Numbered from the stretch's first letter, positions 1,835 through 16,780 are shown. The stretch is 64,000 nucleotides of DNA from Lepidodermella squamata (GCA_047495785.1 JBLDXI010000066.1:496001-560000), one strand, 5' to 3'. Notes: generated from the letters alone by a model not told the origin. Numbers and translations: made by a program.

Positions 1835-2149
1835 TCATTGACCATTAGGCGGAATTTTGAAGGCTCCAAACGACCGAGCAGATGCCTCTTTACTTTTACC
1901 ATTGGGCGGGATTATGAAAGCTCCAAACGACCGAGCAGATGCCTCTTTACTTTTACCATTGGGCGGGATTATAAAAGCTCCAAATGATCGAGCCAATTCC
2001 ACTTCTTCCCTGTGCTTAGGCCCTTGACGTACCGGCTTGCCGCAAATAACAACAGCAATCTGCAATAATAAGAGAATTCACTCGATTTAAAATGAATTGC
2101 TTGAACTGCCGTAACTGACCAAGCTCGCAAACAGCAGATAGCGGATCAT
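1835..2149 (-). CDS. Secreted polyprotein peptide precursor P1 (84 aa; 3 copies of SFGAF[I/K]IPPN-G)
   Basis: Exon 1 2149-2120 MIRYLLFASL; 60-bp GT-AG intron 2119-2060; exon 2 2059-1835 IAVVICGKPVRQGPKHREEVELAR-SFGAFIIPPNG-KSKEASAR-... with a 57-bp tandem repeat. Same signal exon and intron position as P2 and P3. Confidence 0.85.
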
Positions 2150-2412
2150 TTCTGTGAAACTTTCAGATGAATTAAGAGAGGAAAAATAATGAACTGCCGC
2201 TAATGGCTGCTAATTGATGTAGGGTGCAGGGTGCTTAGTCTTCTGCCAAAGATTCCACCTGCCCAGTTAGCATGGGCGCTTGTTAGCTAGCTAGCTTCAT
2301 TCTTGCGCGAACTAAGGAATGGCTTTGCTATTGCCCCAGCTGCTTGCACCGAGGCGATTAGCATATCGGAGTTATTTATAGCTTGTTTTTTAATAGTCAG
2401 CTATTTTTATCA

Positions 2413-2582
2413 TAGGGCAGCCACTTTTTACCGTAGCGGAGAAAATTTCACAATAAAAACCATGAAACGACCAATTGAACGCGAGCAGGCTTTTCGGCAA
2501 ATATTTTTCATTTAAAAAAAAAATTTGCCCTAACAGTCTTCTATCGCGAATTTTTCCCCTTAGGAAAAAAGTGGCTGCCCTG
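2413..2582. mobile_element. MITE (hAT-like termini)
   Basis: TIRs tagggcagccacttttt / aaaaagtggctgccctg; TSD not clean. Confidence 0.6.
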
Positions 2583-4073
2583 CGTTTTCAAACCAGAGTC
2601 GAATAGACAGAAGAAATCGCCTGTTTCTTTTACGCACAAGCTTCGCCCTTCGCCCATAAAAATAAATTATATGGACATGAACATTTTATAGCAATTCAAA
2701 AGCAATTTTAAAGCTGCGCTCCCCTGGACTACTTATAATTTACTATCTGCGAAAAGCATGCGATTAGAGCTTTTTGAACTGGCACATCAAACTTCCCTAG
2801 GATTGAAAAATATCGAAAAAAGCTTTGTTGTTTCGAATAGCGGAAGGCTACCAATCAGGATTCGACCTTGAAACTTGTCTACTTGTTGGCTGACCTGAGC
2901 TGGTGGATTTGTGGCAAACGGCCGGACGTAATTAAATGTCATAAACATGTGCATGCAAAGATTATTGTATTATTACGAATTTATGGGAAAAAGTAAAATA
3001 TTCAACTGTGGGGGTGGGTGATTTCCATCTTTCGCCTGCCTTCGCCCTCTCCAAAACCGGAAACGGTATAGAAAGGGGCGTAACCAGCCCTTCGCTGTTG
3101 GTGGGGCCTGGGTCATATTTTCAGGGTGCACACAAGATTCACAGTCATTGAAATGACTGTGAATCAATACAGTGAATCAATGACTGAAAAAAATGGTTTG
3201 CTTTTTTGGTGAAAATTAGTTTTAATTAGAACCAAAACTCAGGCGAAGCGAGAATATTTTGAAGATTTGTCTCTCAGAAATACTCCGAAACCTCTCAAAA
3301 CTATGACATTTTCCAGTAATCAACCTGCCAACTAAATTTAAGCACTAAATAACTGAATATGCGAGCGAGGCGAGCTTTGGCTAACGGTATTTCTGAACAA
3401 ATCGAGCTGAAAATAGTGTAAAATGGCAGTTTTGTCTATAACTTTCCTAGAAATGTTAAGTTTTTCCTGCGACTTTTAAACTTCCATGGCCCTATTCCAA
3501 GCCAATCGCGACTCCACAAATATCAGCGACCCCACTTGCAATAAATCTAAGCTGTAACATATTCACATCAAACTATATTCAAGATTCAATGATAGATCAG
3601 TCACTCGCGAGCGAATCGAGCTTTAGCTAACGGTTTTCATTTCATTTTCGCCTCAGGATTAGCATGAATCAATGTTCTCGTATCTAATAGATGATGTGCT
3701 TTTTTGCTTCCTTGGCTATAGCTACTGCATGGGCGCTTGAACTAATTGCCGTGTCCGTAGCGTATAGGCTAGTAGTATCTATGTTGCCTTTGACGATCAT
3801 TAAGCCGCATGGCTTTGTATATTATACTCATCGAGTTTCTTGGCGCCGTTCTGTAGAGGCGAGCGTGTCGTGGCTACAGTCATTCGCAACACGCCACTTG
3901 CACCCGAGTGCGAACCCCGACACTGCCAGCCGACTATACGTTGTCCATTTTGAATTCAAGAAATCATGTCAATTGTCCGTATTGGCGGCGAAAATATGAT
4001 ATTTAAGCGCCGCGGGCCGCAGCTGTTTTCTTCAGACTTTCCTCGGATTATTTTCTCAGAATAACTTGACAAC

Positions 4074-13642: not shown

Positions 13643-14614
13643 TTAACAGGTCACCATGTGCGCCTACCAAATGCATGTAAAATCGACCAATTTTCAAATC
13701 AATTTTTAAAAAACTTCATTTTTTCTGAATTTTTGATAAAGTTTATCCTAGTACAACTTTTAGCGCTCTTTCGAACGAGGCAAGGCTCGTCATCTTGTGT
13801 CCTTCACAAGGTCATCTAGATATTCGCTAAGTTGGTCACAAAATCCCGAAGATCGAAATTTGTCGATTATGTCGGGGCGGAAAGAATTGTCAAAATTAGA
13901 TCGGAAAATTTCAGAAACAATATTTTCTTTACCAGGATGGGCTAAGCTGTCGAAATATTCAACTTTTATCCTCATCCGATATCCGATTTTTTGGGAACTT
14001 TCTAGGTTTTGCATGGGCATGTCGAAATTAATGCTTTGAACTTTGAAACGATTTCGCTTTCCTGTGTGACTGTAGATCTCGGCAATCATAAGAAATTAAC
14101 TCCTGGCTTGGCTGTGACACCAAACCTTTTCCAATCCTTTACGGCTTTTCGCAGTCCGCATTAGAGCTGTCGCGGTTGAAATAATCAGTCCTCCGGTTAA
14201 CCCGGTTAGGTTACTCGCATTTTTAATTTTAACCCGGTTAACTTCTTAACCATACAACAAATCTTGCCTGCAAAAAAAGTTACTCAGGAAACATTGCTCA
14301 TTTTGAACGATTCCCAATGATCAATGATTATAAACCCCAGAAATAGGCTTATTTCGTGCTTAACGTAGTTATATCCGGCTTCAAAAAAGTGCGTCTCAAA
14401 TAAAGGACGGTAGGTTAAAACGGGTTAAAAACCAGATTTTCGGATTACTGTAGAGCGCGATGAGTACATTAGGAATCCGTTGAAAAGACCTTGGTTTTTA
14501 CAGCTCGTACACCCTTCACATCACGTGCCTGGCACCGATCGATCCGCCTTAATTGCCAGAATTGCGGAACTGGAGTCACGGCTTGAAATGTCAAATTTTA
14601 ATGCCCTATTCCCC

Positions 14615-14895
14615 TAATCAACACTATTCCATCACTCTTTTGCTTAGGTTTGATGTGATAATGATATTAAAATTATCGTTTTGATGTGTACATAATCAAA
14701 TGAACATCATAATATTGCCAAAGTGCATACAGCTAGATCTAATTAAGAGAGAATTAAGCCAAGGGAATTGGAGGAATCGGCTCGAGGAAAGAAGAGGGAG
14801 CCAAGGGAAGCAGAGGAATCCGCTTGAGGAAAGGAGAAGAAACCAAGAGAAGCAGAGGAATCGGCTCGAGGAAAGGAGAGGAAACCAAGGGAATT
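14615..14895 (+). pseudogene. Inverted, rearranged partial copy of P3 (3' flank plus about 3 coding units, one with a stop)
   Basis: 14615-14750 is the reverse complement of about 15525-15670; 14757-14895 reads PRELEESARGKKREPREAEESA*GKEKKPREAEESARGKERKPRE. Confidence 0.8.
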
Positions 14896-15859
14896 ATTCA
14901 AATATAATTATGGAGCGAAAATCCTTGGTCGGGTTCAGCAAAATAGCCTAACAATTTGTTCTAATGAGGGGTAACTGGAAACCCGCCAACATTCACCACA
15001 CCTTCTTCTCCCGCCGCTCAACAAACAGCTATCTTGTGATGTTTTATAATTGCAGTCGACTAAAGCCGACATGGTTGTTGAAGTTTTGGGAGTTCCGTCT
15101 TTTTACTGAAGACCCGTCGCTCAGTCTTTTGAAGTCCTTTCGAAACGATCGAGCGCCCATGCTAAGGTTAGTTAAGTGAACTACGATCATTTACTCTCGC
15201 GAGATCATTCGAGACTCAGTGTTCGACACAATTCTACCCAACCTATCTTACAAAATGTAACATGCTGAATAGTAAAAACAACAGTAGAGTGTTCCGGAAT
15301 TACCTTTCACCGATTAGGAGTGGTTTGACTCGACTACATGCATACATAGCATAGCCAGAGTGAAAGTATTTTTCGTGTTTCGTCTTTTCATGCTTCAATA
15401 AAATGTATTCGACAATGCCATTCAAAAATTTGAGGTAGTTCCGGCAGCTTGCACCGCTCTTTCACCGGTTAATTTGCACGGCCAATTGACGAGATCACGC
15501 TATCTTTTGCCAACAGAAGAAGTCTCTCTTAATTAGTTCTTTAATTAGTATGCACTTTGGCAATATTATGATGTTCATTTGATTATGTACACATCGAAAC
15601 GATAATTTTAATATTATCAACATCAAACCCAAGCCAAAGAGTAACGGAATAGTGTTGATATTAGAGGGGATTAAAAATTGATATGTCGAATGTTTTGAAT
15701 TATAAATCATTGCTATGAATTAATCGAATGATAAGGTGAAACGAAGCAAATAAAGCCATAATTGAATATTAGCCGCAACGGATTAGCATCCATTTAAAAT
15801 CGAGCCGATTCCTCTACATCTCTCAGCTTCTCTTCTCTTCCTCGAGCCGATTCCTCTTA

Positions 15860-16780
15860 TTACTTCGGCTTTCTCTCCTTTCCTCGAGCTGCTTCCTCTG
15901 CTTCCCTTGGCTTTCTCTCCTTTCCTCGAGCTGCTTCCTCTGCTTCCCTTGGCTTCCTCTCCCTTCCTCGAGCTGCTTCCTCTGCTTCCCTAGGCTTTCT
16001 CTCCTTTCCTCGAGCCGATTCCTCCAATTCACTAGGCTTCCTCTCCTTTCCTCGAGCTGCTTCCTCTGCTTCCCTTGGCTTCCTCTCCTTTCCTCGAGCT
16101 GCTTCCTCTGCTTCCCTTGGCTTCCTCTCCCTTCCTCGAGCTGCTTCCTCTGCTTCCCTAGGCTTTCTCTCCTTTCCTCGAGCCGATTCCTCCAATTGCC
16201 TAGGCTTCCTCTCCTTTCCTCTAGCTGCTTCCTCTGCTTCCCGTGGCTTCCTCTCCTTTCCTCGAGCCGATTCCTCTGCTTCCCTTGGCTTTCTCTCCTT
16301 TCCTCTAGCTGCTTCCTCTGCTTCCCGTGGCTTCCTCTCCTTTCCTCGAGCAGCTTCTTCTGCTTCCCTAGGCTTCCTCTCCTTTCCTCGAGCCGATTCC
16401 TCTGCTTCCCTTGGCTTTCTCTCCTTTCCTCTAGCTGCTTCCTCTGCTTCCCTAGGCTTCCTCTCCTTTCCTCTAGCTGCTTCCTCTGCTTCCCGTGGCT
16501 TCCTCTCCTTTCCTCGAGCAGCTTCCTCTGCTTCCCTAGGCTTCCTCTCCTTTCCTCTAGCTGCTTCCTCTGCTTCCCTAGGCTTCCTCTCCTTTCCTCG
16601 AGCTGCTTCCTCTGCTTCTCTTGGTTTCCTCTCCTTTCCTCGAGCCAATTCCTCTGCCTCTCTTGCCATGTCGCAAATTACGGCAGCGATCTTTATTGAA
16701 GAATAATTCATTGATGTGTATGTCAAGTATTAGAAATATTCGAAACATACCAAGCACGCCAACAGTAGATAACGGATCAT
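15860..16780 (-). CDS. Secreted polyprotein precursor P3 (286 aa; 19 x GKERKP[RK] with EAEEAAR spacers)
   Basis: Exon 1 16780-16751 MIRYLLLACL; 60-bp intron 16750-16691; exon 2 IAAVICDMAREAEELAR followed by 42-bp/14-aa units. Confidence 0.88.

Follow-up and report, generated by a model that had tools for sequence, protein, structure and literature searches.

Does a group of genes that share one short first exon and one charged spacer release several unrelated peptides, or do its repeats form intact proteins? This question is raised by a 64,000-nucleotide (nt) stretch of the Lepidodermella squamata genome (GCA_047495785.1 JBLDXI010000066.1:496001-560000), the whole of which we call the window, with positions counted from its first letter. 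Three minus-strand genes in the window, P1, P2 and P3, begin alike and continue with tandem repeats of unrelated content. We conclude with high confidence that the genes are real. The reading we favour, at somewhat better than even probability, is that they belong to a lineage-restricted, clustered family of secreted polyprotein precursors, which would be cut at their linkers into short peptides. The most likely role is that of an abundant set of exocrine or host-defence effectors, because the P2 peptide is antimicrobial-like and a defensin-like gene lies in the cluster. P1 could be a signalling peptide instead.

A shared first exon and unrelated repeat arrays

P1, P2 and P3 share the start M-[IL]-R-Y-L-L-[FL]-A-[SC]-L, and their second exons open with I-A-x-V-[IF]-[CS] (Table 1). 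All three introns are of the GT-AG type and lie in phase 0 after codon 10. An earlier description of the window, made as a sequence-only reading, had placed the three genes on the minus strand with a 30-nt first exon, an intron of 59-60 base pairs (bp) in phase 0 and the same opening of exon 2, and its coordinates proved exact. Its unit lengths of 57, 87 and 42 bp were recovered by Tandem Repeats Finder, which reports 2.7 copies for P1 (1841-1993), 13.1 copies with 96% matches for P2 (8287-9423) and 20.6 copies with 88% matches for P3 (15800-16665). The three SFGAFIIPPN units that it counted in P1 are present as units, but the third reads SFGAFKIPPNGQ. The translated P1 protein has 84 amino acids and consists of the signal, GKPVRQGPKHREEVELAR, two copies of SFGAFIIPPNGK-SKEASAR and the terminal SFGAFKIPPNGQ. 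P2 encodes 397 and P3 286 amino acids, and degenerate P3 units run beyond the stop codon to about 15800.

A fourth intact type, P0, lies just outside the window. It has a 56-nt intron and encodes 121 amino acids, starting with MNRYLLLVSL and continuing with IAIVEC-KKQFHEESAGGHVAAIVAANRP. Its array holds four units of RQ[AE]AEESAR and IIGVVAAANRP, the final one degenerate. No Met codon is found in exon 2 of P0, P1 or P2, so that translation requires an upstream exon with an ATG. The family start has the features of a signal peptide, with Arg at position 3, a hydrophobic core of 12 residues and V-x-C or V-x-S at positions -3/-1, and signal cleavage is predicted after residue 16. Upstream of the start codon, alignment of P1-P3 reveals a common conserved block at about 12-57 nt before the ATG.

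Table 1. Features of the peptide-gene family; positions refer to the window unless contig C66 is named (UTR, untranslated region)
Feature	Position	Strand	Content	Basis
P1 5' UTR / core-promoter block	2150-2210, approximate limits	-	GGCA.TTCAT..TTTTTC.T.TC..AATTCATC	alignment
P1 exon 1	2149-2120	-	MIRYLLFASL, signal peptide codons 1-10	sequence reading; P1' copy identical
P1 intron	2060-2119	-	60 nt, GTCAGT...TTGCAG, phase 0	GT-AG; 93% identity to P1' against 100% in exon 1
P1 exon 2	2059-1835	-	IAVVIC, pro-region GKPVRQGPKHREEVELAR, 3 x SFGAF[IK]IPPNG with KSKEASAR spacers	stop 1837-1835
P2 copy of the 5' block shared with P1 and P3	9534-9594, approximate limits	-		alignment
P2 exon 1	9533-9504	-	MLRYLLLACL	sequence reading
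P2 intron	9445-9503	-	59 nt, GTAAGG...ACAAAG, phase 0	GT-AG
P2 exon 2	9444-8281	-	IATVFS, EREEESDR, 13 x [GA]ASAV[SA]KAAAKGLKDALKSGKA + RE[EK]ESAR (87-bp units)	
P2 3' UTR	7997-8280	-		cDNA-like contigs, X1 7997-8235 and X3 8148-8316; zero depth in next outward bins
P3 copy of the 5' block shared with P1 and P2	16781-16841, approximate limits	-		alignment
P3 exon 1	16780-16751	-	MIRYLLLACL	sequence reading
P3 intron	16691-16750	-	60 nt, GTATGT...ATAAAG, phase 0	GT-AG
P3 exon 2	16690-15860	-	IAAVIC, DMAREAEELAR, about 18 x GKERKP + REAEE[AS]AR (42-bp units)	
P0, fourth intact type	C66:494342-494760, ATG at 494760	-	same module and linker, new payload	1.2 kb left of window
P4 relic	7028-6906	-	exon 1 MNSYLLLVGL, 69-nt intron, IAAVIGQ then stop; payload-free signal module	identical in paralogous cluster
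P5 orphan signal exon	29158-29187	+	MNRYLLLVSL, GTAAGT donor	exon-1 pattern search
P1-like last unit and stop, relic	12780-12830	-	..CCGCCTAATGGTCAGTGA..	direct reading against P1 1835-1860
Inverted P3-repeat fragment	14759-14893	+	3.2 units	Tandem Repeats Finder

Evidence for real genes comes in part from a second copy of P1, P4, P2, P3 and P5 at C66:419-446 kb, about 79 kb away, whose members are marked here with a prime. P1 and P1' show 12 differences in 255 coding positions, of which ten are synonymous, and the two nonsynonymous ones represent a single Ala-to-Gly change repeated in both spacers (pS 0.164, pN 0.010, ratio 0.064, Fisher p = 1.6e-5). The decapeptide payload is identical in both copies. 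Synonymous also exceed nonsynonymous differences from the unit consensus within the arrays, by 13:8 in P2, 5:1 in P2', 26:10 in P3 and 15:2 in P3'; these events are not independent of each other, and their direction is uniform. Between gene types, mean pairwise identity is 76% in exon 1 and 58% in the intron, and the frames of all seven intact copies are unbroken across 84-397 codons. The reading frames of P1-P3 are under purifying selection. A genome-wide search with the exon-1 pattern found 12 places, all of them on contig C66, while a reversed control pattern gave 0-1 hits; no copy of the signal exon lies outside C66:419-526 kb. Matches with a single mismatch on C3, C36 and C42 and one with three mismatches at C66:317789 were inspected and judged to be chance. 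Since exon 1 is restricted to C66 and the frames are under purifying selection, the array pattern is not a product of chance.

P2 is transcribed, as seen in two sequencing runs, and its transcript is apparently abundant. Reads of three runs (X1, X2 and X3) were mapped to 3900-9700, a region of 5.8 kb around P2. Run X2 resembles genomic DNA, covers the whole region and makes both paralogues visible. Run X3 covers only 8148-9525, that is the P2 3' UTR and repeats. Run X1, which is labelled as a different organism and is about 97% identical, covers 7997-8235 and the P2 repeat units at depths of 38-375, with little else besides the defensin-like neighbour. One of its contigs ends at 7997 in 23 loose letters, which read AAGCAGTGGTATCAACGCAGAGT in one orientation and which we take to be the SMART IIA primer for complementary DNA (cDNA) synthesis, although they point in an unexpected direction with respect to the end of the transcript. 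These letters suggest that X1 is a cDNA library. The introns of P1-P3 would be removed by splicing, as judged from their borders and phase.

The linker and its proposed processing

Besides the first exon, the genes share the linker that separates their payloads. The seven intact genes contain 64 linkers, every one of which closes with E-x-x-[A/D]-R, and Ala-Arg is the final pair in 63. The terminal Arg is kept despite the use of synonymous codons (CGA 55, AGA 5, CGG 4) and is followed by Gly, Ala, Ser or Ile. The earlier claim that an acidic spacer ending in Ala-Arg is common to all units stands for the terminal Arg and, with one exception, for Ala-Arg. At the DNA level, GCAGAGGAATC.GCTCGA is common to P0 and P3, and the near-identical GAGGAGGAATCCGCCCGA is found in P2. 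Arrays of this linker DNA occur genome-wide in this family alone, and 11 scattered single matches elsewhere compare with 3 for a control. With so few single matches, a genome-wide processing tag at the DNA level is ruled out. As the linker DNA is shared by P0, P2 and P3 and found elsewhere at about control level, the linkers are homologous and not convergent. Their homology extends to the left into [KR]-P-R in P0, P3 and P2', and the P1 pro-region starts with G-K-P. In a simple reading, the ancestral unit would have been close to P3 (G-K-..-K-P-R-E-A-E-E-A-A-R), and payloads would have been placed between the linker Arg and the next G-K or ..-P-R.

The partners of the linker are unrelated, with lengths of 6, 10-14, 11 and 22 residues. 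The payloads are SFGAFIIPPN in P1, a cationic, significantly amphipathic helix of 19-22 residues in P2, IIGVVAAANRP in P0 and GKERKP alone in P3. A linker that is kept beside four unrelated partners is expected of a processing signal and is hard to explain as a structural repeat. The P2 payload carries a charge of +3/+4 and has a helical hydrophobic moment of 0.46-0.48, a value matched by 0.2-0.4% of shuffled sequences and similar to that of magainin 2 in the same calculation.

From these elements, the following processing can be proposed. The shared 5' module comprises the core promoter and 5' UTR, the 30-nt exon 1, a phase-0 intron of 56-60 nt and the six opening codons of exon 2, and it would supply a signal peptide of 16 residues that is cut after V-x-C or V-x-S. 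The remainder of exon 2 is an array of payload and linker units, with a linker of the form [KR]-P/A-R-(Q)-E-x-E-E-[SA]-A-R. An endoprotease would cut after the terminal Arg of the linker. In P0, P2 and P3, a further cut at the first Arg is probable, followed by trimming through a carboxypeptidase. Each translated protein would yield one short peptide in many copies, namely IIGVVAAANRP from P0, [GA]ASAVSKAAAKGLKDALKSGKA from P2 (ending in ..NGKP in P2') and GKERKP from P3. For P2, the product may be either GASAVSKAAAKGLKDALKS-amide or a form that ends in ...SGKA. New payloads may have been born between the conserved linkers through duplication and divergence, with expansion of the arrays. Turnover of arrays is seen in the copies of P2, with 13 units in P2 and 5 in P2'; P3 has 19 linkers and P3' has 17.

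The role of the Gly-Lys dipeptide is less general than had been proposed. A Gly-Lys in every unit was claimed, which is not the case: P0 has none, and in P3 it follows directly after the spacer Arg. It stands in the context ..PPN-G-K-S-K in P1, ..KS-G-K-A-R in P2 and G-K-P-R in P2'. Pro stands directly before the spacer Arg in P2', P3 and P0, and in G-K-P-R this Pro would block exposure of the Gly. Amidation, which the dipeptide had been taken to signal, is possible in P1 and perhaps in P2, but not throughout the family, since P0 lacks the dipeptide and P3 has nothing to amidate. The amidation reading is weak. At least 39 Cu2_monooxygen (PHM/DBH-type) domain matches are found in the genome, mostly in tandem on C13 at about 1.99-2.36 Mb, and with domains of the peptidylglycine-monooxygenase type present the genome leaves room for amidation. 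This expansion is unusually large, and the enzyme family includes the peptide-amidating enzyme.

Known precursors and competing explanations

No relative was found in the databases and papers searched. A protein homology search with P1, exon 2 of P2 and exon 2 of P0 returned none, and the ESM Atlas and PDB contained none. For P2, a HMMER search against 1.84 billion representatives gave compositional matches only (best E 1.5e-13, 19-37% identity), all to long low-complexity proteins. Pfam yielded nothing but one spurious match of seven residues, the peptide strings had no match in papers, and the exon-1 pattern had 0 matches in metagenome contigs. The sequence-only reading had proposed an undescribed defence, venom or glandular peptide system that keeps its scaffold and swaps its payloads, a proposal that is supported in part. 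P0, P1 and P2 are indeed without homologue in protein, Pfam, PDB, paper and metagenome searches, and the homologous linker and the selection on the genes bear out the kept scaffold. The family is thus undescribed, but the principle of a scaffold with variable payloads is already known from spiders, apidaecins and frogs.

The closest likeness is to the complex precursors of linear spider peptides such as cupiennins, latarcins and oxyopinins, which contain linkers with the processing quadruplet motif (PQM) and its inverted form (iPQM) (PMC8290080, PMC7889660). Spider linkers start with Arg and carry Glu at positions 2-4, and they end with Glu at -2 to -4 followed by Arg; they are often 5-8 residues long (RNEAR, RSEER, RNEEEAGR) and separate up to 13+ peptides (PMC8290080). 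As in spiders, we find a signal, a short propeptide ending in Glu-x-x-Arg, anionic linkers of the form Arg-Glu...Glu-x-x-Arg and families of peptides that share signal and linkers, and the spider payload is often a cationic amphipathic helix, as in P2. The propeptide ends agree with the PQM (Arg at -1, Glu at -2/-3/-4) in P1 (..EVELAR), P2 (..EESDR) and P3 (..EELAR). The linker rule fits REEESAR of P2, REAEEAAR of P3 and RQEAEESAR of P0, but not SKEASAR of P1. Sequence homology with the spider precursors is absent, however, only one of our four payloads is a cationic helix, and in P0, P3 and P2' the linker comes after a Pro. The host genome is a 121-Mb assembly in which the introns of the peptide genes measure about 60 nt and contig ends carry TTAGGG arrays, and no Chitin_bind_4 (R&R cuticle domain) was detected in it. 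Given TTAGGG telomeres and no cuticle domain, the likeness to spiders does not imply membership, and it is very unlikely that the host is a spider or another arthropod. It is conceivable, but doubtful, that a non-arthropod independently evolved a spider-like excision at Arg-Glu...Glu-x-x-Arg linkers with its own protease and uses it to generate new secreted peptides, that the nearly payload-free P3 represents the ancestral linker scaffold and that one helix resembling antimicrobial peptides and two short hydrophobic payloads were born and amplified between the linkers.

Two further groups of precursors share parts of this design. In the apidaecins, the spacer is RR-EAEPEAEP, processed by dibasic cleavage and a dipeptidyl aminopeptidase, and the payload always belongs to one Pro/Arg-rich family with a C-terminus of the PRPPHPRL type (PMC11549390). 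The repeat number varies between genes, and the design has been read as amplification of the response (PMC11549390; Casteels-Josson 1993 as cited there). These bee and wasp polyproteins resemble our family in their near-identical peptides, in conserved spacers that act as processing signals and in variable copy number. They differ from it in that here the cut would fall at a single Arg after Ala and four payloads are unrelated, and neither the spacer nor the payload features of apidaecins are present. The preproforms of frog dermaseptins are described with a 22-residue signal ending in Cys, an acidic propiece ending in Lys-Arg and a single mature copy (PMC3742671; Vanhoye 2003 as cited there). 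The dermaseptin superfamily likewise combines a conserved secretory module with very different peptides and has a signal with terminal Cys, an acidic pro-region and, in some members, Gly as amide donor. In contrast, our genes have a 16-residue signal, monobasic Ala-Arg sites and tandem copies, and there is no homology. Multi-copy precursors are known from the venom of spiders, the immunity of bees and the skin of frogs, and the present family is most likely a new case without kinship to any of them.

Several observations weigh against the reading we favour. Secretion was judged by rule-of-thumb features of signal peptides only. The P1 linker SKEASAR has no leading Arg and carries Glu only at -5, with none at -2 to -4. 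No contig or joint crosses the P2 intron in X1 or X3, and exon 1 and the 5' UTR are uncovered there. The P2 payload has a low mean hydrophobicity (0.0), a weak point for a peptide that should act on membranes. The P3 payload of six residues would be an odd product, and the Pro-Arg junction is an unusual site for an endoprotease. P2 and P3 are rich in Ala, Lys, Glu and Arg and could serve uncut, as repeat proteins of disordered or helical structure.

The last point leads to the most serious competitor, which we nevertheless hold to be unlikely. The genes would encode secreted proteins that stay uncleaved, intact disordered or helical polyampholytes or amphiphilic proteins serving, for example, as a hydrophilin- or LEA-like protectant, mucus, adhesive or egg coat, in which the linker is the charged half of the unit. 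P3 suits this explanation well, being nearly pure G/K/E/R/P/A with a period of 14 residues and GKERKP as sole payload, and so does P2 with its Ala/Lys/Glu-rich composition and its weak, compositional matches to long proteins. The high apparent abundance of P2 would agree with a bulk product, and a copy number that is free to change from 13 to 5 with a repeat protein. However, a homologous linker with Arg in 64 of 64 cases beside four unrelated partners has the character of a recognition site and not of a structural block. P1 and P0, with 84 and 121 amino acids, are too small and their payloads too hydrophobic for bulk structure. There is no match to LEA or any other Pfam family, and the periods of 29 and 14 residues lack the 11-mer periodicity sought for LEA proteins and hydrophilins.

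Secreted precursors that are cleaved in the same way may also release neuropeptides or pheromones acting on receptors, an explanation we consider improbable for the family as a whole. Like metazoan multi-copy neuropeptide precursors, the genes have a signal peptide, tandem copies and, in P1, a possible Gly amide donor. P1 in particular holds a short, uncharged peptide with Pro, in three copies followed by Gly-Lys, and this peptide is perfectly conserved between the paralogues despite 10 synonymous changes, and the amidation-type domains mentioned above are encoded in the genome. Against this stand cleavage sites that are not dibasic, as would be usual in bilaterian precursors, the lack of orthologues in databases, the fast duplication, decay and change in copy number, the apparent abundance of P2 in small whole-animal data sets and the defensin-like gene interleaved with the cluster. 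These features are better explained by effector genes than by conserved genes for signals. Finally, it is highly improbable that the arrays are non-functional minisatellites with accidental open frames beside a decaying signal exon. The relics and orphans (P4, P5 and the fragments at 12.8 kb and 14.8 kb) do show that members die, but the strong synonymous excess, the intact frame of seven out of seven copies and the transcription of P2 speak against it.

The cluster, its neighbours and its meaning

The second cluster lies within a segmental duplication of about 40 kb, which pairs C66:418.7-458.7 kb with C66:497.5-538 kb (1527-42000 in the window). Beyond window position 18578, on the right, the two copies agree at 99.4-99.9%, as against 90-96% in the part with the peptide genes. 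Such uneven divergence suggests either that gene conversion has acted on the right-hand part or that the peptide locus has changed faster; haplotypes placed wrongly are a less likely source. The genome-wide search with exon 1, which had been suggested as a check, brought P0, P4, P5 and the paralogous cluster as additional members. In the 264 kb around the window, no further member was found among open reading frames (ORFs) with at least two linkers, and a genome search with the P0 protein returned P0 itself only. The exon of P5 differs from that of P0 by five changes, all of them synonymous, and a matching exon 2 was sought within 3 kb of P5 and not found. Downstream of P5, at 29260-31500 (+), transposase-like ORF fragments with hAT-like C-terminal motifs were noticed by eye, and these may have split P5 from the exon 2 that it once had. 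The differences in copy number together with the relics indicate that the locus evolves by birth and death.

At 10760-10960 (-), the remains of a promoter and 5' UTR of the P1 type (..CACAAGAATGACGAAGCCTAGCTGAG.. followed by ..GCAGCAATCCACTTTTCTTC..) lead into no ATG exon. The motif GCGCAAGAATGA is also found about 190 nt upstream of the start codons of P1 and P3.

Inside the cluster, a two-exon gene for a secreted peptide with 12 Cys (6501-6569 and 6626-6895, +) adjoins the P4 relic in convergent orientation. The core of this peptide matches CS-alpha-beta defensins and scorpion K+ toxins in the PDB (nasonin-1 with E 2.4e-4, BmK37, cobatoxin and coprisin), and Pfam gave no match for it. The gene is represented in run X1 by a contig at 6707-6846 with a depth of 9. 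As a neighbour it favours the defence or exocrine reading only by association. A second ORF on the plus strand (4074-4463) has a signal-like start, MESIIQLAILAAVCSAVSA, and a body rich in Cys, Ser, Thr and Ala, and belongs to no Pfam family. It is held by a 3.7-kb stretch (2476-6160) that is absent from the paralogous cluster and that also contains a GIY-YIG-like ORF fragment at about 5600-5900 (-). An Rfam scan of the window gave no match. Elsewhere in the genome, two intronless frames of 395 amino acids show weak 7tm_6 matches (C42:1599690-1600076 with E 7e-5 and C85:156403-156789 with E 4e-4), a family of insect odorant receptors that is met here in a non-arthropod genome.

The general lesson is confirmatory, as the design principle is established in spiders, bees and frogs. 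In practical terms, the analysis yields four candidates for synthetic peptides and the motif E-x-x-A-R for the mining of precursors. If the peptides are released, they would represent an orphan, fast-evolving arsenal in a poorly studied small invertebrate, with P2 as a new candidate antimicrobial helix and two hydrophobic peptides of very small size among the products. The family would then also be a clean natural case of payload birth between conserved linkers, convergent with the venom precursors of spiders. Should a spider-like system have evolved here independently, it would give this animal group its first described arsenal of host-defence or exocrine peptides.

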